NCBI GenBank assembly: GCA_016748015.1
Contig: JAAOMT010000769.1
Location: forward strand, 4,441-68,440
Source of the DNA: Geosiphon pyriformis uo1
Taxonomy: Eukaryota > Fungi > Glomeromycota
DNA length: 64,000 nt
Reading direction: 5' to 3'
Below, in pieces: positions 1 through 52,473 of the stretch (within the stretch, counting starts at the first letter, position 1; each line of letters opens with the position of its first letter). Below the pieces are notes generated by a model. That model ran no database searches. It was not told the DNA's origin and saw only the letters and a list, made by a program, of their open reading frames with translations. Made by a program: the position numbers and the translations under genes.

Positions 1-2640
1 GTTTTTTTTTTATATAATTGGTTTTGGCAAATCAAATAAAAATTTGATTGTTTTTACAAATGTTCTTTTTGATGTCAATTATATTTTAGTGAGTATTATT
101 TTTTATTCAAAAATTTGATAAATGCTAAGTAGTTTTCTAAGTCCATTGTTGTATTTGGTTTTAATATATATTATTAATAATTAAATTTATTAGTTTTTAC
201 TGATTTGTTTTATTTTACTGAATAACCAATCGAAATAAAATATCTATGTTTTAATTGTTTGTTTTTTTGCAATATTTAATGTTATAATTAAATTCGTTTA
301 AATAAATAATTTAGTAAAAAAGTCTTTTGTGGTTTAGTTTTTTTTATATTTTTTAATTAAATAAAAGCTTAGTAATTGGTATATATATTAAATTTATTTT
401 ATTAAATATTTGTTTCAATAAATTATACAATTGCTAAGCATTTTTTTAGTTGTTATATAGTTTTTTTTTGCTTATTATAAGATTTAATTACCATAAACTA
501 TGACTCATTTTTTTTGTGACAAAATAGCATTAAAAAAACATTAAAGACATTAGTATAAAAATAAATAGTTTGTTAAAATTAAGTTGCTTTAAGATTGGTT
601 TAATAATTAGTTTTTTCTTAAAAATTTCAAATGCTTTTTGCTAAAAGATATTTCAATGATAATTGATATTTTTTTTTAAAAGCTAATTAAATAAATATGC
701 AATTTTAGAAAATTTTTTAATAGATGTTTAGTAATATAAAGTTAATCCAAGAAAAAATTATAGTTCTAAAATGTTTATTAATTGTTTAAGCTTTTGTACT
801 TTTTCGACTTTGGTTAATGTAAAAAAAATTTATCTTTTATTACAAAATAATTTAAAAACTGGATAAATTGTTTTTAAAGAATGATTTAATAGAATTGATT
901 TTGAATTTGGTATTTTTTAAAAGATTAAAAACTTTTTAAAAATGTTTTAAATATTTATTTTAAGTTTTTAAGTATATAATAATATTATCAAGATATACAA
1001 AACAAACTTTTGATGTTTTAATTCAAATATTTTGTTTATTAATCTCTAAAATATAAGTAAAATATTTGTTAATCTAAAAGATATTACTATAAATTCATAA
1101 GTTTTATATTTTATAATAAATACAGTTTTTTTTTGCTGATAAAATTTATTTTTATTTGCCGAAATTTAACAGTTAAATCAATTTTTGTAAAATATGCTAA
1201 GCTATTAAATTGATTAAAAGTATTATTATTAATTTTTAGTAAAAAATACATGTTTTTTTTAGTAATTGTATTTAATTAATAATAATAAACACAAAATTAT
1301 AATTTTTTTTTTCTTAGATATTATTATAACAAAAATATTCATTGATTCTTGGTTTTTTGTATAAATTTTAATTTTTTGATTTAATTTTTTTTTTGATAAA
1401 TTTATTATTTTGTTAATTTAATTAATAATATTTTAAATAAATAGACTGGATATTTTTGGTTTTATTTATATGTTTAATTATTAAGAATTAAATTTTAAAC
1501 ACTTTTTTTTAAATGTTTTTTATACTACTTTGCTTTTTTTATCTAGAATTAAGCTGACCGATTCTTAATCTTTAAATAAGAATAAACATAATTTGTATTT
1601 ATTATTAAGGAGTAAAAAAATAGTTGTATTAGTATTATATACAAAAACTATATTATTAATAAATTTTTTTTTTAAGTTGTTATTTGAATATCCTTTTAAA
1701 TATATTATAATAAATAGATTTTTCTATTAACATATATATTATCTAAAAATTTTTTATTATTATTAAAAATAGTAAAAATTAATTAGGTCTTTTTATCATC
1801 TTTTTTTTCTTTAAAATTATCAAAATTATTAAATTTATTATTATTATTGTAATGTAATTATTGTTGTTAAATTATTACAAAAAAAATAGTTTAATATTAG
1901 TATTTAATTGTAATTAATATGGCTTTACTACAAATTGTAAATTTATAAAATTTATAATCTAAAAAAGTTTTTACTTTTTTTAACTATTTAATTCCAAAAA
2001 TTATGGTATAATACTTTGCTTTTAATACTTTTATATCAATTTCAATATACATATTATTAATTTTACTAGACATAAATACAATATTTAGTTATTGCAAAGT
2101 AAAAAATAAACAAATAATTAACTAAATCTTATTTAATTTTAATATTTTGTATTATTGTGTCCTAAAAGATTTCATTTACAAAAAGTGTATTTTGTACATA
2201 ATTTTGTTTTTTTTTCAATAGCAAACTTATAATGTTTGGTTTCTAAGCATTTTTTATGTAATAATACTAATAGATTTCAATTTGCTCAAACTTATTTTCT
2301 TTATTGACATTATCAACTTAATTGTTCTTCAGAACTTAATCTTGATTTTGAAGTATAAGCACTACTTTTTTATGTTGGTTAATAAATTGTTTTAATCATA
2401 TTATTATCTTATTATAATTGTTATGTTTAATAGCATACTAAACAGTCTGTTATATGAGTTTTTACATTTCATTCTATTTTTGTTTTCTCTGTGTTATAAG
2501 ATATAAAACATTAGTAATGATTTTAAATATAGTTAAAAAATTTGGAATTACTATTTTATTAGAAAAATTTTTTGTAGTTTCTTAATTTACAAAGCAAAAA
2601 GCTTTAATAATTAAATTATTGTTTTTTTTTTATTAGTATA
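1..2640 (-). mobile_element. Degenerate Ty3/Gypsy LTR-retrotransposon pol relic (protease-RT-RNase H), heavily C>T/G>A mutated
   Basis: Minus-strand translation gives eroded RT motifs FTKIDL (~1170-1190) and YLDN (984-995, from YLDD), plus remnants of FLGL..YY..FI.NFSKIA and KAFE.LK..L...PIL. Many stops and frameshifts. Confidence 0.75.
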
Positions 2641-2786
2641 CTATTAAAAAACTTCTTTCTTTCCTTCATCCAAAATTCCCAAAAAAGAGTCAAAAGTTTT
2701 TTTGAAAGAAGTTTTTTACCATTCAGTACGATAAATCAAAACCGTTTTTCGATTACGAGGCCACTGTTGGCTCTGTTATTGCTGTT

Positions 2787-4577
2787 ATAAAAAAGACTGC
2801 TAAAGTTTCTGGTTCTAAAAGTGGTTTTAAAGTGGTTGTATCAAGAAAAAAGAGGAAGGGAGGTGTGTTGGCAGAGGGTGTTGATAACGGAAGGGTTGCT
2901 GTTGAAGTTCCTGGTGTTTGTTCATGGAGTTCGGAGACTGGAGATACTACTGAGTCTGAAAGTGTTGATATGGAAGAGGAGTGTCTGGTGGAGAAAACCA
3001 GCTTTGATTATGGTGAAGGTGGAGCTCTGGCTGGTGGAGATTATGATCAGATGCCCACAAGTTCGAAGGTTAAAACCAAAAAGGCATTGAGCAAGTCATT
3101 GGGGAAAATTGACTTCTCAAAAGATGGTAGTGATGATGGTGTTCTCTCGGATGCTTCTCTTGAGCTCCCTCCTTCTGTGAGAAATTTGGTCAATGTTTCA
3201 GTCAGGAAATCATTCGCATTGAATATTGGCTTGGATAAAGTGGCCGGCAAATCTTCTCAGGAAAAACTTGTGGTGGTAAGGAAGTTGTTTTCTGGAATCA
3301 ATGGTTTTGGGGGGGCATCTACCCCCTCAAAATTCTCAGGGATCATCAGGGCGACATTCACTTCCAAATCAAGTCTAATGAAAGCTACTGATAAAGCTGC
3401 AAATGTGAAGATCTTAGTAAACGCCGATCTCAAAAAAGCATCTGGGCGATCAAATTGGGCTGTGGTCGTAAAAGAAATTCTGGTTGGAACATTGTCTAAG
3501 GCTGTGCGTGCTGCACTATCCAAGTTTGGAGTTATTAGGACGATCAAGATGCAGTTAATCAGGCTGTGGCAGAAGGCGGTGGTGAAATTTGAACAATTGG
3601 ATCAGGCTGATTTGGCTGCAGCTGAGTGGTCCATCTTAATCAGGAAAGATGCTGTGCGTATGGCTAGGGCTGATTCAGACAAGGAAGCATGGGATGTTAG
3701 GGACCGACATAGGGTGCTGCTCTATACGTTGCCGATGGGAACCAATGCTCATGATATCTGGGACTTTATTAGATCTGTGGGTGGGAAAACGTGCATCATT
3801 GATCGTCTTTCTGTTACGTATTGGGCCAGGTGTGCTGTTGTTTGTTTTGACTCTGCTGAATCATTGGATGCTGCAGTGGGAACCACGCCAGTACTCAGGA
3901 ACACTAATCTCCGCTGGTCTTGCCTTATTTCTGCTAAATGCGCCAAGTGTGAGAAATTGGGTCACATGTCATTGGGTTGTGCAGTTGGTGGGAAATTGTC
4001 TTCTAGTAGTTCACTGCGTAGGGTTTTCTCAGATACGGATAAAAGCAGGCTGGCAACCATCTATGCCAAACGCTCGGCTCCGGTTGCCCATCCAGTCTCT
4101 TTTGGTGGTCTCTCTTGGGCAAAGGTTGCTTGCGAGTCTTTTTTGCTCCCCCTCTCTGGTCAGAATGTTGTGGTAACAAATGGCTCCTCTTCAGAGATAA
4201 AGCCGTCCCAACCGGTTACGATGGAAGTCAATGATAGGTTTGCCGCTCTTGAGTGCAGTCTCGCCAGCCTTGCAGAGCAAGTTGGTAAGCTGGTTAAGAG
4301 GTTGGATGCATTCGGGCCAACGGTTTCCCAGTCTAGCCCTGGATGTCAGCCGTTGATAACCTCTTCATTACAGGATCAAGAGGCAGATGTAGTGATGAGT
4401 GAGGGTTTGAATGTGTCCACTAGTGGTGAGAATGTCGCAGGAGCGGTGTCTTTTGATATGTCTTCGGTGTCTAAGCTGGAAAACAGCATAAAGTGTCTAA
4501 TGGAAACAGTTCTGGGCCTTTCGGCCAAAGTGGACAGTTTAGGTGCGCTTTCGGTATCTCTACCTCTTACTCAATGA
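2787..4577 (+). CDS. LINE ORF1 (gag-like nucleic-acid chaperone, CCHC knuckle); start codon mutated ATG>ATA
   Basis: Open frame 2832-4577 with CAKCEKLGHMSLGC and a coiled-coil-like C-terminus. The in-frame ATA at 2787 aligns with the ATG at 35652 in LINE B. Confidence 0.8.
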   Translation: MKKTAKVSGSKSGFKVVVSRKKRKGGVLAEGVDNGRVAVEVPGVCSWSSETGDTTESESVDMEEECLVEKTSFDYGEGGALAGGDYDQMPTSSKVKTKKALSKSLGKIDFSKDGSDDGVLSDASLELPPSVRNLVNVSVRKSFALNIGLDKVAGKSSQEKLVVVRKLFSGINGFGGASTPSKFSGIIRATFTSKSSLMKATDKAANVKILVNADLKKASGRSNWAVVVKEILVGTLSKAVRAALSKFGVIRTIKMQLIRLWQKAVVKFEQLDQADLAAAEWSILIRKDAVRMARADSDKEAWDVRDRHRVLLYTLPMGTNAHDIWDFIRSVGGKTCIIDRLSVTYWARCAVVCFDSAESLDAAVGTTPVLRNTNLRWSCLISAKCAKCEKLGHMSLGCAVGGKLSSSSSLRRVFSDTDKSRLATIYAKRSAPVAHPVSFGGLSWAKVACESFLLPLSGQNVVVTNGSSSEIKPSQPVTMEVNDRFAALECSLASLAEQVGKLVKRLDAFGPTVSQSSPGCQPLITSSLQDQEADVVMSEGLNVSTSGENVAGAVSFDMSSVSKLENSIKCLMETVLGLSAKVDSLGALSVSLPLTQ

Positions 4578-7500
4578 GCAGTTTAGTCTGGAAAGTTGCT
4601 ACGTGCAATGTCAGGGGCATGAACAATCCCGCTAAGCAAGAAGACATTATTAGGTGGCATAAGGAAATGAACAATTTAGTCTCTATCATTACTGAAACAA
4701 AATTAAAGAGTAGGGTTCGTCCGTGGATTGCAGACAAGTTTGATGGTGTCCGAGTGTTCACTTCTGGTTTGGACTCTGGTCACTTGGGTGCGGGTGTTGC
4801 TGTTATCATGAACGATTCTTTGGCTCATCATGTGTGCAAGGTTTCTGAGGTGCTTGGTTGGCTCCTTTCCATTAAATTACTTTTTAAGAGTAAACTTTCT
4901 GTGTTGATTTTGGGGCTTTATGCTGATGCTTCTTCAGTGGTTTGGTTTTTTCAAGCTGGTGAAATCAATTCTCTCATTGCAAAGACTGTCAACAAATCTT
5001 CTTTCATTATTCTCGGTGGCAATTTTAATGAAGACGGCTCTCATAAATGTGCAAGTTTCAAAAAATGCTTTGATTTGGGTCTGGTCAATTCTTTAGTTGG
5101 CAGCCCGGCTGCAAAAATGCCCACTTGGGAAAATTCTAGGGGTGTTAAGAAAACAATTGATTACGTGTTTGTCTCCTCAAGTCTTGTCAATGCAATAGTG
5201 CATCGTGAGGTTTTGAATGTCAGTGAGCATTTTGACACAGACCATCAAGCTGTTTCAGTGGATTTGGGTCTGGGTGGGCTCTTGGATATGCGTTTGAATT
5301 CTCTTCGCAAGCAAGCGAATAAAGATCATTGGAAGTTTGACATCAAAAGTGCCAATGAAGCTAAGTGGTTGGAGTTCAGGGATGCCTCAGCTGCTAATGT
5401 CTCTATGTTCTCGGATGCTTTCGGTGTGGCAGTAAAATTTTCAGATGTGGACGCTATGTGGGACATTGTTCACAAGATTATGGTTCTTTCAGCAGGTGGT
5501 ACATTTAAGAAAAAATGGTTCAAAGATTTTGATGGCATGTTCACCAAGAATTCTTCTAGGATTCACAAGCTGGAGCTGCTGGTTTCTAAGTTGGTCAAGG
5601 CTTCACGTTTGGCTTCTAGTAATGGTTTTGCCTCTTTGTTGGAGGTGTGGCACAGACTCGACTCCCCTGGTGCATCAGTGGTTAAGTCTCTGTTTCTTTC
5701 AGGTTCTAATTTTGATCTTATTCGTTTTGCACTGGCCAAAGCTAGAAAATCATACTGCTCCTTCAAGTTAGTGAAATCCAAGCGTGCTGAGGAATCCTCA
5801 ATCAAGCAAGCTATTGGTAAGAGAATGGAGAGTTTTGAGCTGAACAAGGGTCACACCATTAGGAGTGTTTTGGAGTGTCCTCTTCGCAAAGTGGTCCTGG
5901 ATCATTTGGTTGTAGAAGATGAGTTGATTTTAGAGCCTGATTTGGTTAAGTCTAAGGTGGACGAAATTATGGAGAGATGGACCAGAAAACGTGAAGTGGT
6001 GTCTGACTTATCTGAGGATTGAACCCATCAATATCAGCCTCTGGATTACGTATTCGATGGTGCTTTCTCTGATGTCATGTGTTTGATTAGTTTTGATGAG
6101 TTGTTAGCTGTTGTTAAGAATCTTCTTGATGGAAAAGCGGCTGGTCTTTCTGGTATCTCCAATGAATTATGGAAACATTGTGACAAATCTGTTTTGGATA
6201 TGCTTTTGGTGCTCTTGAATTTCTGTTTGGTTGGCGAGTCGGTCCCTGGGCCTTGGAGAGAAGCTTGGGTTTTGATGATTCCTAAACCATATAAATGGGA
6301 GGGAGTTCTCACGAACACCCATCCTATAGCTTTAATTAAAACGGCCTGCAAGATTCTCTCCAAGATCCTTTCGGATAGGATCTTTCTGGCTTGCAGCACT
6401 TTTGATGTTCTTTGTGGGGACAATTTTTTGGTTTTGAAGGGTATGATGACTCAATTTTCCATTTTTGCTATCAGTTCTGTGGTTGAGGATGCCTTGGAAA
6501 AGAACCGTAAACTTTGGCTGGTTTTACAGGACATGTGCAAGGCTTATAACTCAGTTGGTTGGGAACATCTTAGGAGGAGTCTAGTCAGGATCAAAATGTG
6601 TGACAGGTTTATTAAATTTTTTGGCAGTATTCACAATGGTCGCGTCAACAAAGTGATGACCGACTTTGGCTTAACTGATGGGTATTGTGTCCACGATAGG
6701 CTGGATCAAGGGGAAGTTTTCTCGCCTCTTCTCTGGCGTATTTTTTATGATTCACTTTTGTGTAAGGTCAAGAGACAGGATAGTGTGTATGGCTACAGAT
6801 TGAATTCTCATTTCATATTAAGGACTGGCCAGGTGGATCCTCGAGCTGGGCTGTCTTCATTTCTTGCTGCCGGTGCTTTTGTTGATGATACTATCTGGAT
6901 TGGTAGCAGCCAGGCTGCTACACAATGCATCCTTGATGTTGCTAGCGAGTTTTTTAGGTTTAATGATATTTCTATAAACAATGACAAAACGGTGGCCATC
7001 CCCATCAATTGCCGGGTGCTGGATCCTTATTTGACTATTAGTGGTGCACTTATTTCCATTGCCAAGAGAGGGGAATCTCATCGCTATTTGGGTATTTTTT
7101 TGTCTTCTGAGGGTCTTTCGAAGCCCAGCTTGGCTAAGGCCCAGGCTGATGTATGGTTCTTTGCAAATCTTGTTTTAAGAAAGGCAATTTCGGACAAACA
7201 GTATGCATATTTGGTGTCTGCAGTTCTTTTCCCTATCATCAGCTACAGGACTCAGTTCAGTTTTGTTTCTGTTGGTGTTTGTAGTAAATGGGATGCTCTG
7301 GTTCGCAAGGTCTTAAAGTCCAAGTCTGGGTTGCCATGTGATTTTCCCAGTGATGTATTTCATCACCTCTCTTTGTACAATTTAAAAACTTTCGAAAAGA
7401 TACAGGCTGAGAGTAAATCGGCCTCCGTTGTTGCTTTCGCGAATTCTACTGGTGTCTTGGGTTGCTTGTTTTCTCATAGATCTCATGACCTCCAGGTTTT

Positions 7501-9262
7501 CAGCTGGCGTCTTTGTCATCCTTTGCTGTTTCCGGTTCATGTTGGTATCAGTCCCTTGGATAATTTTTTGGTGGGTGTGGTTTGCATTTTTTCTGGGTGT
7601 GATTTGTCTTTGGAAGGCCCTCTGGATTGTGTTTTTCGTCGTCGGTGTGGTACTCCTATGTCTTTGGTTCTTGGTGAATCCTGTTTTTTCAAGTGCATCT
7701 CTTTGCTCAGGCATTATGGAATTGCTTTCGTGGAACAGCTTCATAACCATAATGGTGATGTTTTCAGTTGAGGTACCTTCAAACACTGGAAGAGACTAGA
7801 CCCTCATGGCCCAGTCTCTTTCTGGTTTGATTTTTCTGTTTGCTTTCTTGGTGGTGTTGTTCTTCTTTCCTCAAGTTCTTCTTTGGTAGATGGTCAAGCT
7901 GTGTCTGATATTCGTCTTTCTCATAATTTTGGTGTGATTCGTGACACTTTGCCAACCATTGATGCTGCCCGCCTTTCTGTGTATACGGATGGGTCTCTTT
8001 CTGGTCTGGGCACTGCTGACATGAGAGCAGATGCTGCCACTTTTTTTGAGGATGTTAACTTGGGTTTGGGTGTTGGGGTGTCTGGTTTGGTTTCTTCTAC
8101 TCTGATGAAACTGCAGGCCATAGCTTTGGTCCTTGAATGTGTTCCTTTTTCTCGTTTGATTGACTTGTTCTCGGATAGCCAGACTGCTTTAGATGCATGT
8201 AGGTCGGAGTCTTTGCTAGTTTGTCTGGATTTCAGAAACTGCTGTTGGATCAAGCGTTATCATATTGCCACTGTCATTCGTCAAAAGAATTTGGATGTGA
8301 ATTGGGTTAAGGTGAAAGGTCATTCAGGTGTCTCAGGCAACGAGCATGCTGATGCGCTTGCCAAGGGTGCTGCTCGCTCTGCTTGGCACCTACTTCATTT
8401 AGTCAGTGAACGTTTTCTATGTGCTGGTGGCACAGCAGTTTCTGGTAATTCTAGACACTTTGTTCGTGATGTTTTCCAGTCGTTTCACCAAGCTCGTTGG
8501 GAGATTGGAGAGGGTTCTTGTGTTATGGATGATAGTTTGCGTGCTGATATCAATTGGTCTATGTCTTCTATGGTGTGGCACCCCGATTCTCACTTGGCAT
8601 CCAGTTTTACCAGTATGCGCATGGCGGGATGTCGTACTTACTTTATGAAGGCTCTTCATCATCGGCTTCTTGTTGCTGTGCGCAAGCATTTATATGACAG
8701 GAGTTACCCCAGTGTGGTCTGTCTGTTTTGTGGTGATGTTGAGACCTCAGATCATGTCTTTTTGTGTCCTCAGGATGCCGTTGGCCATGCTCGTTTGTTG
8801 GGCGCACATGCTTCAACTTGGGAGGCTCTTTCTGGCCTTTCTCACTCTTCTTCATGTGTCTTACAGGCCTTAGTTTCTTGTGTTTCTGAGATTGGAGTTA
8901 GTGTTGCTCTGTGTAAGGGTTTTGTTTTTGATAAATGGTTTTGTGAGTCTATTTCAGTCTTTAAAGATTCTAGGGAGGGTGCTAAGAGGATTGTAAGCTT
9001 TGTGTGTAAGTTTTGTTTAGCATTTTGGAATGATGTTTGGTTGGTCCGGGCCAGACACCGAGCATTTATGGAGAAGCATAGTTTGATTCCAAGTGATGGC
9101 TCCATTCCTGCTTCGGTTTCTGGTTTGCCTAAGGTGCTTTTGGCTGGTGTGGTCAGATTGCTGGAGGTGGCTGAGGCATTTGGTGTTGGTTTTGGGTTTC
9201 GTAAATTTTGTCCATTTTTTTCAGGTATTGGAGATTCAGTTTCTGTGCATATAAGTGTATAG
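4574..9262 (+). pseudogene. LINE ORF2: AP-endonuclease, reverse transcriptase, RNase H, C-terminal Cys/His knuckle; two in-frame TGA stops
   Basis: Motifs TCNVRG, ETK, GNFN(GDFN), IDY, TDH (APE); FVDD (RT); YTDGS...KVKGHSGVSGNEHADALAK (RNase H); CLFCGDVETSDHVFLC. ORF pieces 4493/6077/7883 share one frame and are broken only by TGA at 6020 and 7769. Confidence 0.92.
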
Positions 9263-11700
9263 TGTAATCCTGACTGGCTCGAGTGACTGGTGACGTGTAG
9301 AAAGCGCATGATTCGCACCTAGTTTAGATCATTTGTATGATGTATAGCACTAGGTCGCATTTGGATCTCACTCGTTAAAATATAAAAAAAAAAAAATACT
9401 ATTACAAAAGTATTATTTGAATATTAAATTCCACAATTTTTGAATATAATATTACTTAAAAATAATAGCAATAAACAATACTATAAGATATATTAAATAA
9501 ACATAAATAAAAATAAGAAACAGAATTAATAATTATAATAAAATATGAATATTTGCTGTTTTTTGATCATAGATTTGTGACTTTCTATATTTTTTTAATG
9601 TATTTTTATTGACTTTAGCAACTATTAATTTTAATAAAATTTGTTTTATATTATATACATCCTTAATAAACTCACTTATTATATTAAGACCAAAATTCTA
9701 AATATTAAAATGTTGTTAGATAAATAACTTAAAAAAGTACATTAGGAAATAAATTTTTTTATTTTATTATAAATATTAATATTCAATGATAATTAACTTA
9801 CAATAAAGTATAGGCATTATATCATTTCTAAATATTCTATAAATAAGATATAAAACATAAGATATTAAGTTATTTATTTGTTAATCTCAAAAAAAATGTT
9901 TATGGTCAATTAATATAATTTTTATACAAGATAAGAATGTATGATATTCAAAAAAATAATTTTATTTTATCTTATTTTTAAGTTTTACATCTAATATATC
10001 AGCAAAATTACAAACTGCTATTTGCTAAAAGGATGTATTTAATAATATTATTAAGACTTTTAATACAAAAAGTAATTTGAATTTCTGCAATAAATATTTT
10101 TGATGTAAATACATAGACTATTGCTTATTAATTAGAATAAAGAGCTCTCATTAAGTAATTTTTAATATTAACATATATTTTAGTAAGCTGTAACTATTGT
10201 TTATAAAAAGATTTTTTACATAAACTATTGTAACATAAAAAAAAATTATAAACAAAACTTTTATATTAATTATAAAGCTTTAACTTGAGATTTCATAATA
10301 AGTTTTCATTAATGTAAAAAATACAATAAATTTGATAAGTTGTTTTGTATACTTAAGCAACTACTATATCTGCTGTAAAATTAATATCAGTAATAAACAT
10401 TAATAATTTTGTTATTGTTGCTTTTTTTGTGTATTCTAGAATCTATTTATACAATTTAGCAGTTTTATTTAATATAAGGACTTGTGCAATAAAATGGAAT
10501 TTAGTGTTATTGTCTACAATAAAAAAGAGAAAAAATAATATTTGATAGTGATTAATTTTTGCTGTATTGTTATTTAGAACAATATTATAGTACTTTAACC
10601 AAAAAACAACTTGTGCAGAAGACTTCTAAAATATACAGATAAGTCAATTTTTATCAATTTTAAATTTTACAACTTATTTGGAATCATTTAATTTGCAATT
10701 TATAAGAGTTGTCAACAAGCAGAATGTATTGTGCTTTTTATTGCTATAAACTTTAAATCTTTATATTGTATTCATAAAGTCACAATTAAGAATAAATATT
10801 GTTAAAAATTTTACTTTTAATAATTTTCTTTGAATAATAATTGATAAATTTGCACATTTTGTATAAAATTAGATCTTTTAAAGAATGTTATCTGAAATTT
10901 TTTAATACATCAAAACATATTTTCTAGTGTTAGAATATAATAAATAATTGTGTGTATTATTAAGAGTAGTATGAGTTATTTTGTGTAAATTTTTAGTGCA
11001 GTTAACATTAGTATATTAACTATATTCTTAATGTTTTGATTTGGTGTTCTGATAATTTTAAACATTGATCTTTTTTTTTGGTTTATATTGGTCACCAAAT
11101 TCATATCCAAAAATACAATATTTAATATTGCTATCTGGATGTTATTTTAATTTCTTTTAAATAACTCTAAATCTTTGTTGTTTACTATAGATTTTTATAA
11201 TTATATTGATGTTTTTTTATGTTTCAAAAACATAATTGGTGCAAAATTTTATAGCTAAATAAATATAAGAAAATCAAACACTAAATATGATTAAAATTAT
11301 AACTAAAAATTTTATCTCTATTTATAAATACTTGGTTATTTAATTGGTATAAATTTTTATTGATGTAATTATGAAATTGATTGGCCAGCTTTACATTAAA
11401 AATAAATTTTAAATTAGAATAGAAATAACTTTAATCTTTTAATACATGATTTTTTATTAGACATATATATATATCTTTCTTTAAAAGCAAACTGGTTATT
11501 TCTTTTTGTTCTGTATTTATATTAAAATATTAATCTTAATACAATATATAATATATAGAGTATTATATTTAAAATTGCTATTATACTATTAATCACAGTA
11601 CTAATTAGTATATTTAAGTGAATATTATCTAGAATAATTTGAAGAGTCAGATTTTGTATAATTTATTGCCTTTAATACTTTAGAATCTATAGTTTATACT

Positions 11701-12660
11701 TGATATTACTAGATATTTTTGGTCTCTTTTTTTAAATATTGTTAATGTTTGTTTACTGTGAATTTATGTTTTCTAAAAGCTAGTAAACTTCTAATAACTG
11801 AATTTATCTTTAAATTATTTCCTATAATTTAAACTGCTAAGCTTATAAGTAAAATGATCAATTTTGTATCAGTTACTTTATATAGTTATATTGTAGTAAA
11901 TATCAACTTTTTTCCAGAAATTGCTTGTTTGAAAGCTCATTAAAATATGTAGTTATTTTGCTGTAAAAATCAACTCTTTTACAGAAATCTTGTCTATAGA
12001 CTACTTTAATAATTTTAATAAAAAAATATAAAAATATAAAAAAAATAGAATTTTGTTAAGAGAATCGTTTTTTGGTCCAGACTTAAAGTTACTAACAAAT
12101 TACTAAAATTAATAACTAATTAATTTTAAAACATTAGTTAAATTTCAGAAAAATTTTAATATATAAATAGTTAAAAAATTTGATTTTTAAGTATTTAATA
12201 TTTATATTATTTTTTGTAAAGCTAATTAATGTAAATTATAAGTAAAATATAATGAAAAATATATTTTCTTAAAGAAAAAAGCTTTTTTTTATACAATTTG
12301 TTGTAATATTAGTTTATAAACTTGAACTTTCTTTTTTTTCTATGATTTCAATGAACTAAAGATATATTTTGACAAACTAAAAATATATTTCAATGAATTA
12401 CAAGTTATTTTGATGAACTATTAACTATTTTGGTAAATTATCTATTATTTTTACAAATTTTTACAAATTTTAGTGAATTCTTAAATATTATATAGTTTAG
12501 AGTATTGTATAATTTGATCATCCTAATTTCTTTTGTATAAATTGGATTATTAATTAAATAATAAGTAATAATTTGAAATAATATTAATATATGCTAATTA
12601 ATGATAGAAATTATAAGAGTAATTTTATGCTAGTTAATAGCTAAAATTCTATTGATAACA
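11701..12660. repeat. ~960-bp LTR-like segment (TG...CA) present only in the left arm; related to ~14090-14750
   Basis: Begins tgatattac and ends ttgataaca; absent at the matching site ~47345. Internal blocks align directly with 14090-14750. No clean TSD. Confidence 0.4.
12346..12450. repeat. Degenerate ~21-bp minisatellite (tttcaatgaactaaagatata-like)
   Basis: About 5 imperfect tandem units visible. Confidence 0.55.
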
Positions 12661-12908
12661 CTAGTACACAAATTTCTATGCTTATATTTATAATATATAA
12701 GTTTTTTTGGTGATTTAAATACTATTTAAAACAAAAAAAACTTTTTGCTATGCAAGAATGAAAGCAGTTACACCAAAATTTTGATGTGTTTTTGTACTAC
12801 AATATACAGATGGCATACATCAAATTCAAAAGCTATATAATATAATATATGTAATTATTTTTAATTAATAAAAATAATTAATATTACATAATTTAAAACA
12901 GATTATGA

Positions 12909-12946
12909 CGTCGATCACTGCGCCATATATGGCGCAGTGATCGACG
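12909..12946. repeat. Perfect 38-bp palindrome CGTCGATCACTGCGCCATATATGGCGCAGTGATCGACG
   Basis: Equal to its own reverse complement over 38 nt. Confidence 0.97.
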
Positions 12947-12957
12947 AAACAAATAAA

Positions 12958-12989
12958 GTCACGTGTCACAATATTAAATCACGTGATTT
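12958..12989. promoter_or_regulatory. Two CACGTG E-box motifs (gtcacgtg; aaatcacgtgattt) next to the palindrome
   Basis: The motifs are present in the sequence; function is inferred only. One intact copy remains in the other arm (47041-47046). Confidence 0.4.
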
Positions 12990-20669: not shown

Positions 20670-20739
20670 NNNNNNNNNNNNNNNNNNNNNNNNNNNNNNN
20701 NNNNNNNNNNNNNNNNNNNNNNNNNNNNNNNNNNNNNNN
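20670..20739. other. Assembly gap (N run)
   Basis: Ns; its right edge mirrors the left edge of the gap at 32162. Confidence 1.
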
Positions 20740-22459: not shown

Positions 22460-22461
<2 letters not shown>

Positions 22462-32161: not shown

Positions 32162-32406
32162 NNNNNNNNNNNNNNNNNNNNNNNNNNNNNNNNNNNNNNN
32201 NNNNNNNNNNNNNNNNNNNNNNNNNNNNNNNNNNNNNNNNNNNNNNNNNNNNNNNNNNNNNNNNNNNNNNNNNNNNNNNNNNNNNNNNNNNNNNNNNNNN
32301 NNNNNNNNNNNNNNNNNNNNNNNNNNNNNNNNNNNNNNNNNNNNNNNNNNNNNNNNNNNNNNNNNNNNNNNNNNNNNNNNNNNNNNNNNNNNNNNNNNNN
32401 NNNNNN
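32162..32406. other. Assembly gap (N run)
   Basis: Ns. Confidence 1.
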
Positions 32407-34986: not shown

Positions 34987-35505
34987 AATGTGAATAAAGA
35001 ACAATGAATAAAAAAGAATAAAAAGTAAATAAATGATTATTCAAAGAGAGTCTCTTTAAAGATTTATTTAATAATATATTTAGAAAATTATTTGTTTAAA
35101 GATGAGTTCTTATTTATGTTGTTTCTTCTATGTTCTCATAGAAGAAACAAATCAATTTTTTAAACCTTATTTATTATACTAAATAGGTTTAACTATGAAC
35201 AAATTTAAATTGCTATATTATACAAAATACTGAAAAATTTTCCAATTGTCTTATAAGACCCCTATCATAATACTTTGTAAACAAATATGGCTTTAATTAA
35301 ATTAAAAAAAAAAGAAAAAACAGTTTAACTTTTAATAATAATGCTGTTTTGTCAAATTGTGAAAGTGATAATAAATTAAAAAAAATGATTAAAAATATGA
35401 TATTTTTAAAACTTATAGATTCCAATATATATCCTATTTTATGTTTTAAATCTAGGTAACTAAACTTATCTTTTTGTTTAAATCTTATTAATTTGAATAA
35501 TAGGG

Positions 35506-41500: not shown

Positions 41501-42257
41501 ATACTTTATGAAGACTCTTTACTATCAGCTCCCTGTTGTTGTGCAGAAGTGCTTATATGATAGGAGTTATCCCAATGTGGTGTGTTTGTTTTGTGGTGAC
41601 ATTGAGGTCTTGGACCATATTTTTTCTTGTTCATTTGAGACTGTTGGTTATGCTCAGCTGTTAGATAATCATGCATTGGCTTGAGAGGTGCACTCTGGTT
41701 TGGTTTGGTCTTCTTTGTGTGTCTCACAATTGCTGTCCACTTGTGTTGCTGATGCTGTAGTTGGTACAGTTCTGTGTAAAGGCTTTGTTTTCAGTGGTTG
41801 GTTTTGTAAATCAGTTTTGGTTTTTAAGGATTTCAAGATTGTGACTTTGGTCATTGTAAATTTCATGTGTGCATTCTGTCTCTCTTTTCGGGATGATATT
41901 TGGCTGGTCCGTGCTAAACACTGGGCTTATATGGAAAAAAATGGACTTATTCTATATGATAGTTCTGTTCCAGTTTCAGTTTTTGGTTCTACTTTGTTGT
42001 TTTCTCCTAGTGTAATCAGATTGTTGGGTATTGCTGAGGCTTTTGGTGTTGGTTTCAGATTTCGCAAGTTCTGTTTGTTTTTTTCAGGTATTGATGATAT
42101 AGTCTCTATTCATATAGGTGCTTAGTGTTGTTTTGGTTGGTCTGAGTGGCTGGTTACGTGTGGAAAATACATGATTCACTTCTAGTTTAGATCATTTGAA
42201 TAATGTATAGTACTAGGTTATATTTAGATTTCACTCATTAAACGTAATAAAAAAAAA
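35506..42257 (+). mobile_element. Full-length but degenerate LINE B (same family as LINE A, different subfamily), poly(A), 10-bp TSD
   Basis: TSD aataataggg at 35496-35505 and 42258-42267; empty site at ~17300-17315 (reverse complement gaataatagggtct). ORF1 ~35652-37450 and ORF2 37447-42125, both with many stops; APE, RT and RNase H remnants. Confidence 0.95.
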
Positions 42258-45200
42258 AATAATAGGGTCTTAATTGGATTAAGTTATAAAAAATACACAA
42301 TTTATATTTGTGTTTAATTATTATTAATAAATACATGTATAAATTATTCAAAATTTAACCAATAACTTTACAGTTAAATTTTAAAAATATAATTTTAATA
42401 GTTAAAATATCAATAGTTATAATACAATACATAAATAATAAAATTAATTATACACTTTAATTAAAATCAGTTTAATATTTTTTGAAAAAATTATAACAGC
42501 TGTATTATTTTTATTACCAATTTTAAATTATTTTCTATTTTTGAATTTTTTTGAAAAATTAGCAGCTATAATTTTAAGACCAATTACATTAATTTACACT
42601 TTATTTTTATTAACTATTTTTAATCTTTAAGTATTTTTTAAGAATAAATATTATTATTTTTTTGGTTAATTATCTATAAATGATCAGTAAAAATTTAAAT
42701 ATATTGATTTTAAACCACATTAAAAATTATAAAAACAATTTAAATTTTATTAAACAACAAAACAAAACAAAACATTTTTTAAGAAAAAAATGTAAATTGC
42801 TTTAGTATAAACTTTTGCTTTTTAAAACTTTTATAAATTTATTTATCAAATTTTAAAATTTGCCATATCTTTATTAAAGTAAAATTTTTATTGTAAATTC
42901 ATTTTTATATTAAACAGTTATGGTTATCAAAATTTAAAAGATAACAAAAAAGTTTTTTTATTACTCATTATTAATTATGACAAAAATAAAAAAAATTAAA
43001 AATATTTGTTGTTTTATTGTATTTTATAGTTTTTTTTTTGATTTAATTTTTTATTTATAAATTTACTGTAATAAATTTCAATAGCATCTTTTAACTTTAA
43101 CAATAAAGAGTAAAAATTAACTACAAAACACCAAATTTCTTTATAAATTTATAAAATATTTATTATAAAATAATTTATTTTTATTAAACATATTTATATA
43201 TTTATAAATATTAATACTTATAAAATTATTACTAATAATTAAAATTTTTTATATTTAACTTTTAATTTCAAATTAATATTATATTTATAATTTATTAAAA
43301 AATTTTAAACAAAAAAAACAATTTTGAGTTTTTTATTCTATTAAAATTAAACAAATAAACTAACTTTTTAATCCAATCTTTAAAAACAAAGTTTTTAGTA
43401 ATAATTATATAATATTTATAAGACTTTAAATTAGTAAGTAAAATATTAATTACAAGTTTTTAAGTATTTATATTTTTTTATTTATATTTTTTTTGACAAT
43501 AGTATTTAAAATATTTTTATTTTGTCATATTATATTTGAATATTTAAAATTATATAATTATTTTTTGTAATTATTAAAAGTTTTTTATGTAGAATCTTTA
43601 TTAAATAAGTTTACAAATTAACAATTAAGCAGTTAACAAACTTAAACTTAATATAATTATTAGAATACTAAATTATAACAAATCTTTTTTAATTAACATA
43701 TTTAGTTAAAGTATTAATATATTATATAATATATTTAGCTTTTATAAAGTACAATTTACAAAAATATATAGTTTTTTTTACAATATACAATGCATTACCA
43801 AAAATATTGTTTAATATATTAATAAAAATTTCAGTTTTATTTATAATATATATAAATTATAAATAATATTAATATTGTTTTTTTTGTTTTTATTGAATAA
43901 TATTAAAAATTGTGGTTTTACCAAAATATGAATTTTACATATTATTTAATTGACAATTACAATAAATAAAATTAATAAATTAACAAAATTATAATAAAAA
44001 TAATATTAATAAAAAATCTTGAATTTATATATTTTTTATAATTATAATAAATTAATATTAGATCTTTAGTCGAAATGTTTTTTATAAAAAATAAATCTTT
44101 CAATATAATAAATTATTTAAATTTAATATTCTGAAAAATGATATTTAAGTATCAAATTATAAAGTTTTATTTTTTGAAAAAAGAACTTAATTTTAATTTA
44201 GACAATTAATTTTTTGAAATAAATAAATAAAATTCAACTGTAATAAGTAATTTTTGTGTTAATTAAAAAAACTCGAATAGAAAGATAAAACAATATTTAT
44301 TCTTAAATAATTAATATAAATAAATTTAATATTTAGCTTCTTTAAATTAAAAGCTCAATATATCATATAAAATAAATAATACTTTATTTATTTTATTAAG
44401 TTCTTAATACAGTTAATGATGATCTAAATATTTAATTAGATATTTATATAAAATTTTTATAATTCTAAAGAAGTTTTTCTGTATTTATTAGATTAAATAT
44501 TAAATTTTAATAATTCTAAAAAATATTATTTTATAATAAAGTTTTTTATTTATAATAAAACGTATATATTTAACAAATAAAAAATTAAAATTATTTTTAT
44601 TAACAAATTAAACTATAAAATATTTAACTTTTAATATTTATTTTGTTTTGTTTAAATTATGTTTCAATTTCATTAATTGAAAATATAACAAATCTATTTG
44701 TAAATTTGATATATTAATTTAATTTTTTTTAGTTAATTTGTATAATTAATTTATAGAAATATTATTTTTAAAAAGTTTTGTTATGAATAAATCTTTTATT
44801 TTTATTTATTTACTTAGCTATAATTAATTATATATATTAGTTACTAATATCATTAATTAGCCATTTTATTTTTAAAACTTGTTATTGCTATAATTATTAA
44901 CTTGATTAATAACTTAATTATTGACTTAGTTATTAATTTAGTCATTAACCTAATCAATAACTTGATTATTAAACAAATCATTAATGTAATTACTAACTTA
45001 ATCTTTAATTTTTTTTTGAGAATATATAAACAAGATTTTTTAAAACTGTAAAAAAACATTTATACTTAAATTATAGATCAATACAATAATATCAATTCTT
45101 TTATTTATTTTTTACTATTTATTTATTTATTTTTTTTAATTTGTATAATTATTAATTTTTATAAATATATTAAATAAATATTTATTTAAAAATACAATTG

Positions 45201-47059
45201 CTATTATTTAAAGTAAAATTATCTATTTATTAATAAATTATTAATTACTATTTAATTTATGTTATTATTATCACTTAATTGAATTATTTTCTATTCTTTG
45301 TTCTATCAATAATTTGTGCTAATAATAATTAATATTTAATTATATTAGAACAATAGCTCTTGATTATAGCTATTAACAGAATACTTATTTTTTAATTTAG
45401 TTGTGTTTACTAAAATTGATTAAAAAAAGCACTAAAATTATAACATTAAAAATTATTTATTAAAAAACATTAAAACAAAGCATAAAATAAATAATAAAAA
45501 TTACTTATTAAAAAGATATATTTATTAGAATAAATTAGTTATTAAACTGAAAAGTTAGATACTATAATAAATTGTATAAAAAAAAAGCTTTCTTTTTAAA
45601 AAAATATATTTTAATTAGAATGAATCTTTATTTAAACTTAAGTTATTTTTTTTATAAATCAATTCAAATAAAATTTAAATTAAAAAACATAAATCTTTTA
45701 ATTATTACTTAAATTTATTTTTTCTTATTAAATTTTAAAATTAATTAACTATTAATTTTAGTAATTATTAATAACTTCTAAGCCTAAATTTAAAATAATT
45801 TTTTAACCCATTTTTTATTTTTATAGCAAAATAATTACACATATTTTAAAAAGCTTACAGATAAAATTTTTCTGTAAAAAAATCAACTTTTATCACAAAA
45901 TTAGCCATTTTATTATAAATTCAACAGAATATATAATCTTAAGTATAAAAAAATACTTTTAAAAAAATTAGCTTATTAGAAATTCACAAACTTTTATTAA
46001 TAACAGATTACAATAAAACAAATATTAATAATATTAATAAAAAGTAAAAAAACTTTTGGTAACAGCATTTAAAAAATATGTTTTTGTTTTTTCTTTAATA
46101 ATTATTATATTATTTACTATTTATGTTCGGAATTTTATAAATAATTTATAAATTGGCTAATAGTAAATCTTGTTTAATTTTTAGAATTATTAGTTAAAGC
46201 AATACAAAAAATCCAAAAACCTTTAATATTAATCTTATTATAATTAATTATAATAGCTTTAATATAATTTAAAACCTAAAAATTAAGATTTTTTAGTCTG
46301 TTATCAATATAAAAACATTGGCTATTTGACATAAAATTGTAATAATTTACTAATGTTTTCTTTAATTATAAGAAATAACAATTAAATTAATAATAAAATT
46401 AATAATAGTTAAGCTTTTAATTCAAATACAAATTAGGCTTATATAAACTTTTTTAAAAAAATTTTTTTAAAAATATAAGTTTTTAAATTAATAAACATAT
46501 CTTTTAAAAATAAAAATACAAGCCAAAAAAAAAAGTTTTTTTGTTTAGTTTTAATTTAATTAATAATAACATAGAATTACAAAAAACTAATAGCAAACTA
46601 TTAAGTTATATCAGATTTAAAAAACAGAAAATAAATTTCAATCTGAATTTTAATACTACTACTTTAAAAATATTCAAAAATTTATCAAAATTAAAACTAT
46701 CAAAAATTATTCAAAAATTAAATTTTTATTTAATAGTTAATGATCTAATAAAAACACCTGTTTATATTATTTTTGATCACTTTATAATTTATTCACAATT
46801 CTGAAAAAACTTTCAAAAATTTTTAATATTCAAAAAATATATCCAAAGATTAACAAATGTTTTTAATAAAATAATATTTCTCTTATTTGTAAAACACAAA
46901 TATTTAGATATTTTATAAATTGATATTAAATACAATTAGAAAAAAAGTTAATAAACTATTAAGAATTAATTTAGTTATAACAACTTATTACAAAAAAAAT
47001 TTGTAACAACTTCGAAAAAGCATGTGATTTAATATTTTGACACGTGACTTTATTTGTTT

Positions 47060-47097
47060 CGTCGATCACTGCGCCATATATGGCGCAGTGATCAACG
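47060..47097. repeat. Second copy of the 38-bp palindrome (37/38 match)
   Basis: cgtcgatcactgcgccatatatggcgcagtgatcaacg. Confidence 0.95.
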
Positions 47098-49649
47098 TCT
47101 CAATTTGTTTTAAATTATGTAATATTAATTATTTTTATTAGTTAAAAATAATTACATATATTATATTATATAGTTTTTGAATTTGATATATATTATTTGT
47201 ATATTATAGTACAAAAACACATCAAAATTTTTGGTGTAACTGCTTTTATTCTTGCACAACAAAAAGTTTTTTTTGTTTAAACAGTACATAAGTTACAAGA
47301 AAAACTTATATATTATGAATATAAACATAAAAATTTGTGTACTAAATATAAACTATAAATTTTAAAGTGTTAAAGACAACAAGTTACACAAAATTTAATT
47401 CTTCAAACTATTTTAGATAATATTCACTTAAATATATTAATTATAATTATAATTGTAATTAATAGTATAATAGCAATTTTAAATATAATCATTTATATGT
47501 TATGTATTGTATTAAGATTAATATTTTAGTATAAATACAAGACAAAAAAATAACCAGTTTGCTTTTAGAGAAAAGTATATATATATTTCCAATAAAAAAT
47601 TATGTATTAAAAGATTAAAGTTATTTCTATCCTAATTTAGAATATATTTTTAATGTAAAACTGGTTAATCAATTCCAGAATTATGTCAATAAAAACCTAT
47701 TTCAATTAAATAATTAAGTGCTTATAAATAAATATAAGATCTTTGGTTATAATTTTAATCATATTTAGTGTCAAATTTTTTTAAATTTATTTAGCTATAA
47801 AATTTTGCACCAGTTATGTTTTTGAAACATAAAAAAATATCAATATAATTATAAAGACTTATAATAAACAACAAAAATTTGAAGTTATTTAAAAGAAATT
47901 AGAATAATATTCAGATGACAGCATTAAATATTGCACTTTTGGATGTAAATTTGGTGACCAATATAAACTAAAAAAAAAGATTAATGTTTAAAATTATTAA
48001 AATACCAAATTAAAACATTAAGAATATAGTTGGCATATCAATATTAACTGCACTAAAAACTTACATAAAATAACTCATATTATTTTTAACAATACACATA
48101 ATTATTTATTATATCTTAACATTAGAAAATATGCTTTGATATATTAAAAAATTTCAGATAATATTCTTTAAAAAATTTAATTTTTAACAGAATATACAAA
48201 TTTATTAATTACCATTCATAAAAAATTATTAAAAGTAAAATTTCTAATAGCATCTATTTTTAATTGTAACTTTATGAATGCATTACAAAGATTTAAAGTT
48301 TATGACAATAAAAAACACAATATATTTTACTTGTTAACAACTCTTATAAATTGCAAATCAAATAATTTTAAATAGGTTATAAAATTTAAAATTAATAAAA
48401 ATTGGCTTACTTGTATATTTTGAATGTCTTCTGTACAAGTTGTTCTTTGGTTAAAGTATTATAATATTGTTCTAAATGACAATACAGCAAAGACTAATTA
48501 TTATTAGATGTCATTTTCTCTTTTTTTTATTGTAGACAATAACACAAAATTTTATTTCATTGTACAAGCTCTTATATTAAATGAAACTGCTAAATTGTAT
48601 AAATAGATTTTAAAATGCACAAAAAAAGCAATAATAACAGAACCATTAAGGTTTATTACTAATATTAATTCTATAATAGATACAATAATTGCTTAAGTAT
48701 ACAAAACAATTTATTAAATTCATTGTATTTTTTACATTAAAAAAAACCTATCAAAATAACTTAAATCAAAGCTTCACAATCAATATAAAAGCTTTGTTTA
48801 TGAATTTTTTTTATGTTACAATAGTTTATGTAAAAAAATTTTTATAAACAATGATTACAACTTACTAAAATATATGTTAATACTAAAAATTATCTATTAA
48901 GAGCTTTTTATTTCAGTTGACAAATAATAGTCTATGTATTTATATTAAAATATTTATTACAGAAATTCAAACTATTTCTTACATTAAAGATCTTAATAAT
49001 ATTATTAAATACATGCTTTTAGCAAATAGCAGTTTGTGATTTTGTTAATACATTAGATATAAACTGGAAAATAAGACAAAATAAAGTTATTTTTTTTGAA
49101 TATTATATACTTTTATTTTGTATAAAAATCATATTAGTTGACCACGATTTTTTTTCTGAGATTAACAAATAAATAATTCAATACTTTATATCTTATATCT
49201 TATTTATAAAACATTTAAAAATGGCAAAATATTTATACTTTATTATAAGTTAATTATTATTGAATATTAATACTTATATTAATAATAAAATTTATTTCTT
49301 AATATATTTTTTTAAATTATTTATCTAACAACATTTTGATATTTAGGATTTTAATTTTAATATAATAAATAATTTTATTAAAAATGTATATAATATAAAA
49401 CAAATTTTATTGAAATTAATAGTTGCTAAAATCAATAAAAAAACATTAAAAAAGTGTAGAAAGTCACAAACCTATGACCAAAAAACAGCAAATATTTATA
49501 TTTTATTATAATTATTAATTCTGTTTCTTATTTTTATTCATGTTTATTTAATATATCTTATAGTATTATTTATTGCTATTATTTTTAAGTGATGTTATAT
49601 TCAAAAATTGTGAAATTTTACATTCAAATAATACTTTTGTAATAGTATA

Positions 49650-52473
49650 CTAATAAAAAAAAGACAATAATTTAATTATTAAAGCTTTTTGCTTTGTAAA
49701 TTAAGAGACTACAAAAATTTTTTCTAATAAAATAGTAATTCCAAATTTTTTAACTATACCTAAAACCATTACTAATGTTTTATATCTTATAACACAAAGA
49801 AAACAAAAATAGAATAAAATGTAAAAACTCACATAACAGGCTGTTTAGTATGCTATTAAACATAACAATTATAATAAGATAATAATATGATTAAAGCAAT
49901 TTATTAACCAACATAAAAAAGTAGTGCTTATATTTCAAAATCAAGACTAAGTTCTGGAGAACAATTAAGTTGATAATGTCAATAAAAAAAATAAGTTTGA
50001 GCAAATTGAAATCTATTAGTATTATTACATAAAGAATGCTTAAAAACCAAACATTATAAGTTTGCTATTGAAAAAAAAACAAAATTATGTACAAAATACA
50101 CTTTTTGTAAATGTAATCTTTTAGGATACAATAATACAAAATATTAAAATTAAATAAGATTTAGTCAATTATTTGTTTATTTTTTACTTTGCAATAACTA
50201 AATATTGCATTTATTTCTAGTAAAATTAATAATATGTATATTAAAATTGATATAAAAGTATTAAAAGCAAAGTATTATACCATAATTTTTGGAATTAAAT
50301 AGTTAAAAAAAGTAAAATTTTTTTTAGATTATAAATTTTATAAATTTACAATTTGTAGTAAAGCCATATTAATTACAATTGAATACTAATATTAAACTAT
50401 TTTTTTTGTAATAATTTAACAACAATAATTACACTACAATAATAATAATAAATTTAATAATTTTGATAATTTTAAAGAAAAAAAAGATGGTAAAAAGACC
50501 TAATTAATTTTTACTATTTTTAATAATAATAAAAAACTTTTAGATAATATATATGTTAATAATCAAATATTGATTGTTAATAGAAAAATCTATTTATTAT
50601 AATATATTTAAAAGGATATTCAAATAACAACTTAAAAAAAAATTTATTAATAATATAGTTTTTGTATATAATACTAATACAACTATTTTTTTACTCCTTA
50701 ATAATAAATACAAATTATGTTTATTATTATTTAAAGATTAAGAATCGGTCAGCTTAATTCTAGATAAAAAAAGCAAAGTAGTATAAAAAACATTTAAAAA
50801 AAAGTGTTTAAAATTTAATTCTTAATAATTAAACATATAAATAAAACCAAAAATATCCAGTCTATTTATTTAAAATATTATTAATTAAATTAACAAAATA
50901 ATAAATTTATCAAAAAAAAAATTAAATCAAAAAATTAAAATTTATACAAAAAACCAAGAATCAATGAATATTTTTGTTATAATAATATCTAAGAAAAAAA
51001 AAATTATAATTTTGTGTTTATTATTATTAATTAAATACAATTACTAAAAAAAACATGTATTTTTTACTAAAAATTAATAATAATACTTTTAATCAATTTA
51101 ATAGCTTAGCATATTTTACAAAAATTGATTTAACTGTTAAATTTNNNNNNNNNNNNNNNNNNNNNNNNNNNNNNNNNNNNNNNNNNNNNNNNNNNNNNNN
51201 NNNNNNNNNNNNAACGAATTTAATTATAACATTAAATATTGCAAAAAAACAAACAATTAAAACATAGATATTTTATTTCGATTGGTTATTCAGTAAAATA
51301 AAACAAATCAGTAAAAACTAATAAATTTAATTATTAATAATATATATTAAAACCAAATACAACAATGGACTTAGAAAACTACTTAGCATTTATCAAATTT
51401 TTGAATAAAAAATAATACTCACTAAAATATAATTGACATCAAAAAGAACATTTGTAAAAACAATCAAATTTTTATTTGATTTGCCAAAACCAATTATATA
51501 AAAAAAAAACCAAAAAAATCTTAATTAATTACAAAAAATTATTTAATTTAAAAAAAGAGAAATCAGGATTTATAATATACATACCGATTTTTTAACAGAA
51601 CATTTCAGAAAAACAAAAACTATTTAAAAAACATTAACACAATATTATTGGTTAATATTAAAAAAAGATATAACAAAATACATTATAACTTATCATATTT
51701 GCTAATAAAAAATAAATCTAATCGAAAAGAAAACATTTATTCCATATTTGTTAATTAATCTTTTAACAGAATTGAAATTAATGTTGTAAACTACTTAACA
51801 ATAACCTTTAATAAAAATAAAAATATTATAATAGTAACTAATTGCTATTTCAATAGCCAATTTTATCTATGAAAAATTATATATAGATGTAAATATTTTT
51901 AAGAATTACTTTCAAATAGAAAAAAAGCTTTTTTTAGCTTATTAATAAAAAAACTATTAAAGAAACTTGAAATATATCACAAATTTTTTTCTTTTTATTA
52001 TTTACAAATTAATAGATTAATAAAATATTTTAACTGAATACTTTATAAAACTTTAGCAAAAACTAGTAAAAAAATAAATCTATAGGACAAAGTTTTGTTT
52101 TCAGCTTTTTTTGTTTATAGAACAGTAAATTATAACATAACTGATTATGAACTTTTTTATTTATTTTATAAATATATAATAATATTATCTATTAAAACTA
52201 ATATTGAAACAATACTCTTTAAAGAAATAACAAAATTAAGTTATAAAAACTTTTTACAATAAAAATTTAGAACAATTTTAGACTTTTTAATAAAAACACA
52301 AATAATTGTTTATAAAAAAATAAAAACATTTCAAGAAAAACTTAAAAAAAAGAAAATCAAAACAATATTTTTAGTAACAAATTTTTAAGTTAATAAAAAA
52401 ATTATTCATAATTAACAAAATATTAAACAATAAATTTTATATATTGCAGAATTAATATAAAACAATATTTAAT
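49650..52473 (+). mobile_element. Degenerate Ty3/Gypsy pol relic (protease, RT start, integrase)
   Basis: Protease tail IDIKVLKAKYYTIIFGIK*LKKVK (~50245-50315); RT FCVYY..LNTITKKNMYFL.KINN...FTKIDL (~51010-51135); integrase HHCC remnant IHTDFLTEHFRKTKTI*K...YYW...KDITKYI.TYHIC (~51577-51702); core remnants FNRIEINVV, YYLQINRLIKYFN*ILYKTLAK and AFFVYRT. Confidence 0.85.
51145..51212. other. Assembly gap (68 N, although the mirror arm has ~860 bp here, 299-1161)
   Basis: The flanks match 1162 and 298 on the reverse complement. Confidence 0.95.

Follow-up and report, generated by a model that had tools for sequence, protein, structure and literature searches.

A probable inverted segmental duplication around a genic spacer in nuclear DNA of the fungus Geosiphon pyriformis

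When a stretch of unique, gene-bearing DNA lies between two long inverted copies of the same repeat-rich sequence, does this reflect a genuine duplication, a segment that can switch its orientation, or an error of scaffolding? The question is raised by a stretch of 64,000 nucleotides of the fungus Geosiphon pyriformis (the window; all positions refer to it unless a scaffold is named), which comprises positions 4441-68440 of scaffold C434 (84,656 bp) in an assembly of 128 Mb and 792 scaffolds. The genome, for which a 'k-mer binning' approach was used, has been described with 129 Mb, 795 scaffolds and 64% repeats (PMC9453076). The locus is nuclear DNA of G. pyriformis and the whole window has a G+C (GC) content of 25.7%. 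An earlier note on this DNA had proposed that recombination between the arms might flip the core, and had offered a fold-back or inverted duplication as the alternative. The collinear arms, their arm-specific transposons and the contig junctions together favour the latter, and we consider it likely that the locus is a genuine inverted segmental duplication, i.e. a large nuclear palindrome with a spacer.

Two inverted arms with separate histories

A BLASTN self-comparison resolved ten collinear blocks in which positions 1-21109 and 31775-51510 are reverse complements of each other around a core of 10,665 bp (21110-31774); a more permissive scoring scheme yielded AT-rich noise only and was dropped. 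From the outside inward the blocks pair 1-298 with 51510-51213 (100% identity), 1162-2651 with 51144-49635 (96.5%), 9396-11701 with 49648-47344 (86%), 12662-14500 with 47344-45560 (79%), 14920-16066 with 45564-44425 (87%), 16049-16775 with 44225-43498 (95.8%), 16797-17314 with 42780-42258 (94%), 17305-17568 with 35505-35253 (93%), 17688-20503 with 35254-32407 (88%) and 20740-21110 with 32161-31769 (93%, including an insertion/deletion (indel) of 18 bp, the first 247 bp being identical). The aligned arm sequence amounts to approximately 11.5 kb, with 92% identity across the aligned pairs and 79-100% per block. Homology ends abruptly at 21109/21110 (left) and ~31775 (right), two positions that correspond to a single homologous arm base. 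The pair of reverse-complement arms of some 20 kb around a unique core of 10.7 kb, as described in the earlier note, is thus recovered as two collinear copies in inverted orientation, whose linkage on one molecule beyond the innermost 371 bp derives from scaffolding across gaps.

The arms do not end at positions 1 and 51510, where the note had placed the limits of the repeat. Positions 1-714 of the scaffold, which lie beyond a gap of 3726 N directly left of the window, match window positions 52600-53418 in inverted orientation (91-97% identity), and the left arm (1-21109, with its inner boundary taken from the alignment) therefore extends across this gap to the end of the scaffold. The right arm, as matched within C434, covers 31775-53418, and its homology probably reaches at least 55092, by way of a separate scaffold, C394, that is discussed below.

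The arms differ by substitutions, by indels and by two long interspersed nuclear elements (LINEs), which are retrotransposons that lack long terminal repeats (non-LTR). The left LINE (2652-9395, plus strand) occurs only in the left arm; its coding region is broken into four open stretches and has, in a Pfam scan, the domains Exo_endo_phos, RVT_1 and RNase_H, i.e. an endonuclease, a reverse transcriptase and an RNase H. The right LINE (35506-42257, plus strand) occurs only in the right arm, is more decayed and was assigned by its homology to the left LINE, to which it is 73-82% identical. Both copies have the 3' poly(A) tail and the target-site duplication that characterize non-LTR retrotransposons, the duplication being TACTATTA for the left and TAATAGGG for the right LINE, and inspection of the junctions showed that the empty site is uninterrupted in the opposite arm in each case. 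The tails, target-site duplications and empty sites imply that the LINEs inserted independently after the duplication, and that the arms are two distinct stretches of DNA with separate histories. Since both LINEs are on the plus strand, their orientations relative to their arms are opposite. Further segments are confined to the left arm (960 bp, 419 bp and 119 bp) or to the right arm (roughly 200 bp and 717 bp).

Searches of the genome against itself at the DNA level revealed that the arms are a patchwork of dispersed repeats and of DNA that is confined to the two arms. Positions 1 to ~2063 belong to a single dispersed family, whose other genomic copies are 70-81% identical. They are followed by a second dispersed repeat ('TE A'), which has dozens of genomic copies at 80-86% and was compared with 13 of these: its first part is found at 2053-2651 and the remainder, the main body, at 9396-13000, so that the left LINE has split a single copy. 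The stretches ~13000-17300 and 19575-21109 were found only in the two arms when the assembly was searched. Between them, 17300 to ~19500 belongs to a large family of tyrosine-kinase-like kinase genes with many genomic copies at 73-88%. Apart from the kinase, no open reading frame (ORF) of at least 60 amino acids is present in 12600-21100, except for one of exactly 60. Outside the LINEs the arms have a GC content of 13-22%, and the right arm is strongly depleted in CpG.

The state of the kinase gene differs between the arms. The left copy (17939-19309, plus strand; Pfam PK_Tyr_Ser-Thr, E-value 4.8e-32) consists of exons that are open in the ORF list. The right copy (33576-35254, minus strand) contains 10 in-frame stops, an insertion of 59 bp and an insertion of 1 bp, and is a pseudogene. 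The change within this block was one-sided: 165 sites have G or C on the left and A or T on the right, vs only 12 with the reverse. Among the CpG dinucleotides, the cytosine of the right copy has been changed at 37 of 73. Two further diverged kinase copies are located to the right of the right arm (57031-58843 and 63006-63997, both on the plus strand), with 73-85% identity to the arm copies; given these two additional copies nearby, the palindrome sits in a local cluster of kinase genes.

The 960-bp segment that is specific for the left arm (11702-12661) recurs at the same position inside many TE A copies, in either orientation (e.g. C701:183193-184148 and C649:65381-66291), and is absent from others. 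Neither a terminal inverted repeat nor a clear target-site duplication was visible for the left-arm segment.

Gaps, junctions and a possible scaffolding artefact

A different explanation of the geometry is that the left arm and scaffold C394 stem from a second haplotype, or from a paralogous region elsewhere in the genome, and were placed head-to-head with the core by mistake. The argument for or against a real structure was drawn from the assembly sequence alone. The connection of the left arm to the core contig crosses a gap, and the arm ends where the scaffold ends, as a misplaced piece might. However, the contig in question (20740-32161) is gap-free and carries the inner 371 bp of the arm at each of its ends. 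The two inner copies, which reach to the same homologous terminal base, differ by four substitutions, an indel of 2 bp and the indel of 18 bp, all within 125 bp of the core, in agreement with what the earlier note had read from the same ~370 bp. Because the two ends of the contig can be told apart, the junction of the left arm and the core is a distinct, read-derived adjacency. Moreover, exactly two copies of the inner 371 bp and exactly two of the arm segment 19575-20503 are present in the assembly, and one copy of the inner arm is needed for each end of the core.

The gaps next to the core also argue against a false join. The left one (20670-20739, 70 N) is located 371 bp from the core and the right one (32162-32406, 245 N) lies opposite left-arm positions 20504-20739, which comprise 166 read letters and the 70 N, i.e. 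236 positions; the two arms thus agree in order, orientation and size. Both flanks are collinear with the other arm at every gap, with order and orientation in agreement, and no gene spans a gap. An inverted haplotype placed on the wrong side of the core would, in addition, be expected to conflict with the paired reads. Finally, the substitution divergence over kilobases (6-13%) far exceeds the difference that is expected among co-existing nuclear genotypes in these fungi, and combined with the different transposon insertions it does not look allelic. The view that the structure is not a simple duplicated contig is borne out by the diverged arms, the arm-specific LINEs and the different states of the two kinase copies.

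Scaffold C394 has features that would suit the alternative haplotype as well. It is a short separate scaffold (6,231 bp; locus L021) that was observed to be collinear both with 54504-55092 and with the terminal 6 kb of C434: its first 590 bp are 98% identical to the former stretch, its last 2.1 kb match the final 2.1 kb of C434 at 92%, and both scaffolds terminate at the same homologous base. It is without a dispersed repeat of 2.3 kb and without ~19 kb (containing the two further kinase copies and repeats) that are present on the right side, and therefore looks like the right flank in a diverged form with fewer insertions, as a piece of an alternative haplotype would. The alignment suggests to us that the reverse complement of C394 continues the left copy, in which case the duplication would span to both ends of the assembled sequence. 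The ~1.1 kb between the two break points (53419-54503) are largely high-copy repeat, where an assembler could be expected to break off.

Several observations weigh against a genuine duplication, or at least against trusting all of its details. Firstly, the attachment of C394 to the left arm is proposed from collinearity only. Secondly, an outer boundary was not found when the self-comparison was extended to the left, as the duplication runs off the assembled scaffolds. Thirdly, the sizes of the outer gaps disagree with the other arm, a point that also favours a misjoin: the outer gap of the right arm (51145-51212) is 68 N long where the left arm has 863 read bases (299-1161), which means that the gap was set too small or that sequence has been lost from the right arm, and the 3726 N on the left face no more than 1089 bp in the right arm. 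From the two mismatches it follows that both gap sizes are unreliable or that there are indels between the arms. Fourthly, every perfect tract of at least 247 bp adjoins an assembly gap, and the very high identity of such tracts could partly stem from the assembler having reused one collapsed sequence for both arms; a harmless alternative is that the assembler may have broken the sequence where the copies are identical. Taking the junctions, the copy numbers, the inner gaps and the divergence together, we regard a head-to-head haplotype artefact as unlikely.

Mosaic divergence and possible inversion of the core

The divergence between the arms of the putative duplication is not uniform. By block, the substitution divergence is 0-2% for 1-2651, 13% for 9396-11701, 11% for 12662-14500 and 6% for 14920-16066; further inward, it is 4% and 2% for the next two blocks, 8% for the kinase block and 1% for the last 371 bp. 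The kinase block is itself heterogeneous: the gene (up to ~19330) has 203 mismatches and 1435 matches, vs 26 and 1110 for the 1.2 kb between the gene and the gap, which are ~98% identical between the arms. The arms are therefore much more alike in their innermost ~1.8 kb and in the outer zone (to ~9550) than in the middle. Perfect tracts were found near the core (247, 166 and 117 bp) and in the outer part (418 and 298 bp).

Most differences between the arms are transitions (267 transitions vs 36 transversions for the TE A copies), with cytosines changed in every dinucleotide context. Transversions considered separately are nevertheless unevenly distributed, with 8 in 2158 at the arm ends vs 114 in 5100 in the middle (Fisher p = 3e-10), and hypermutation of repeated segments can thus not explain the whole mosaic. 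The comparison of TE A with the 13 other copies adds to this. Both arm copies are ~13% removed from the family consensus throughout, and of their differences from this consensus ~85% are common to both arms up to ~9600, vs ~50% at 9600-11700. A single ancestral TE A copy thus has different coalescence times in two of its parts. As the family's majority consensus is itself AT-shifted (16% GC) and hence unfit as an ancestor, only shared and private changes were counted and the changes were not polarised. We infer that patchy gene conversion from arm to arm, or a later re-copying, has affected the outer part and, by analogy, also the inner 1.8 kb.

The base composition of TE A is a matter of its own. 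The copies in the arms (9396-11701 and 47344-49648) and those elsewhere (loci L008-L020) have a GC content of 16-18% and almost no CpG, except for L017 with 23% GC, and their cytosine changes are alike in CA, CC and CT contexts. Signatures of repeat-induced point mutation (RIP) were undetected in Gigaspora margarita and in Mucoromycotina (PMC8647823). The C-to-T decay of the Geosiphon repeats may therefore merit work that separates methylation-driven deamination from a RIP-like process.

A history that would account for these features is the following. A single event would have duplicated a transposon-rich region of tens of kilobases, together with a member of the kinase family, and placed the inverted copy on the far side of the core. 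After the duplication each arm would have received one LINE, smaller insertions and deletions would have occurred, and the right kinase copy would have decayed to a pseudogene, with heavy, transition-dominated C-to-T change in the segments that belong to multi-copy families. Exchange between the arms may go on at the arm ends while the copies decay independently, and the near-identical tracts are sites at which crossing over would flip the core, alone or together with the inner arm.

This leads to the earlier proposal that recombination between the arms flips the core. Perfect tracts on both sides of the core provide a candidate substrate, and such flipping is plausible. The stronger reading, that the segment is actively invertible and that both orientations co-exist among the nuclei, could appeal to the length of the identical or near-identical inverted tracts that flank the core, to the mosaic of coalescence times, which suggests that the arms exchange sequence, and to the rare spacer inversions reported for a human Y palindrome (PMC3723533). 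Yet the assembly contains a single orientation, most of the arm length is a poor substrate with its 79-90% identity, and the gene content of the core (RPL19, a UBA protein, a hypothetical protein and a UBX-like gene) gives no hint that orientation matters or is switched. The features that define plastid inverted repeats are lacking too, and the comparison with these that the earlier note had made does not hold: only the geometry of two inverted copies around a single-copy region is shared with the plastid repeat and its flip-flop isomers, whereas the present locus is nuclear, with LINEs, intron-split genes and diverged arms that lack ribosomal RNA (rRNA) and transfer RNA (tRNA) genes, and is not part of a circular organelle genome. 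We consider an actively inverting segment to be quite improbable. It is likewise unlikely, though somewhat less so, that the locus is one of a genome-wide class of Geosiphon palindromes that are still converting and whose spacers occur in both orientations among co-existing nuclei; if true, this class would supply structural variation to a fungus without a known sexual cycle.

Among known structures, the locus comes closest to large palindromes, i.e. inverted segmental duplications with a spacer, and agrees with them in geometry. The palindromes of mammalian X and Y chromosomes (PMC3723533, PMC8327919, PMC8600007) share with the present locus the multi-kilobase inverted copies, the unique spacer and the presence in the arms of a gene from a multi-copy family; possible signs of exchange between the arms are seen here as well, and inversion of the spacer is possible in both cases. 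The mammalian arms are over 99% identical by virtue of frequent conversion, whereas those of Geosiphon form a mosaic of 79-100% (92% overall) in which only the end tracts reach 98-100%, so that the identity of over 99% that typifies sex-chromosome palindromes is not attained. Other differences are that the gene in one arm is dead, that the arms are mostly transposon debris and that Geosiphon is a multinucleate fungus without sex chromosomes. Long inverted repeats also mediate inversions in fungal genomes, for instance in Candida albicans; as in Geosiphon, repeats on the kilobase scale there flank unique genes in a mostly clonal fungus and offer homologous recombination a substrate for inversion. 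The Geosiphon arms are much longer, are over most of their length too diverged to be a good substrate, and are assembled in one orientation.

As it stands, the locus is an ordinary inverted segmental duplication, and its relevance lies mainly in annotation and assembly: it marks a fragile place of a short-read scaffold, suggests that the 6.2-kb C394 belongs at the left end of C434 and gives a dated pair of paralogous stretches. The pair illustrates the ageing of duplicated DNA in an early-diverging, mycorrhiza-related fungus, with independent LINEs, loss of a kinase and strong C-to-T decay of repeats. If conversion or inversion is real, the arms would be a convenient marker for recombination within and among the nuclei of a lineage in which sexuality is a matter of debate.

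The remaining readings can be treated briefly. In the geometry of a core between long, AT-rich, transposon-filled inverted repeats one might see an inverted-repeat centromere like those of fission yeast or Candida tropicalis, centromeres of this type being known in fungi (PMC7292649), or a giant mobile element of the foldback type with the arms as its terminal inverted repeats. Against both, the core is GC-richer than the arms and far from gene-free, carrying intron-split genes of the housekeeping type such as RPL19, which is accompanied by at least two or three others; the part of the core that was searched (21100-24000) is single-copy in the genome; the arms are composed of unrelated repeats and unique DNA; and neither outer ends nor a flanking target-site duplication can be defined, since the duplication runs off both scaffolds. 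A centromere or element is very improbable. A telomere-associated duplication was ruled out as no telomere repeats are present, a fold-back sequencing chimera by the arm-specific transposon insertions and the genic spacer of 10.7 kb, and a plastid-type inverted repeat by the nuclear-type LINEs, the kinase, the intron-split RPL19 and the absence of rRNA and tRNA from the window.

Core genes and neighbouring repeats

The core (spacer) has a GC content of 33-39% and a CpG ratio that is near-normal. Within the searched part the spacer is unique: the own-genome search with 21100-24000 recovered no other copy in the assembly and weak low-complexity matches only. A search for independent contigs that encode a core protein returned none, and the window contains no tRNA, Rfam family or telomere repeat.

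The 'housekeeping gene island' of the earlier note is accurate for one gene. The gene encoding ribosomal protein L19e (RPL19; 24825-25690, plus strand) is clearly a housekeeping gene; it is split by introns and three exons were matched with Pfam (Ribosomal_L19e, E-value 1.5e-19; Ribosomal_L19e_C, 2.4e-23 and 1.4e-8); the assignment of its last stretch (25544-25690) was purely visual. The other genes encode a protein with a UBA domain (22552-23749, minus strand; Pfam UBA, 2e-8; at least two exons), a low-complexity hypothetical protein and a protein with a weak UBX-like match. The second of these (26295-28061, minus strand) has a main exon of 588 amino acids, which is 100% identical to the deposited 'hypothetical protein G9A89_002599 [Geosiphon pyriformis]', a model of 662 amino acids; no Pfam family was found for it and a protein atlas search with the 588-residue ORF was uninformative. 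The third (28604-30140, plus strand) is tentatively a gene of the UAS/UBX (FAF1-like) type, with a Pfam UBX match (0.013) below the curated cut-off and a match to the structure of the FAF1 UAS domain (0.44).

Outside the paired blocks of the window, a tandem array of units of ~100-107 bp was observed at 52808-53246, the repeat having dozens of genomic matches at 72-83%, and the scaffold end of the left arm falls within it.

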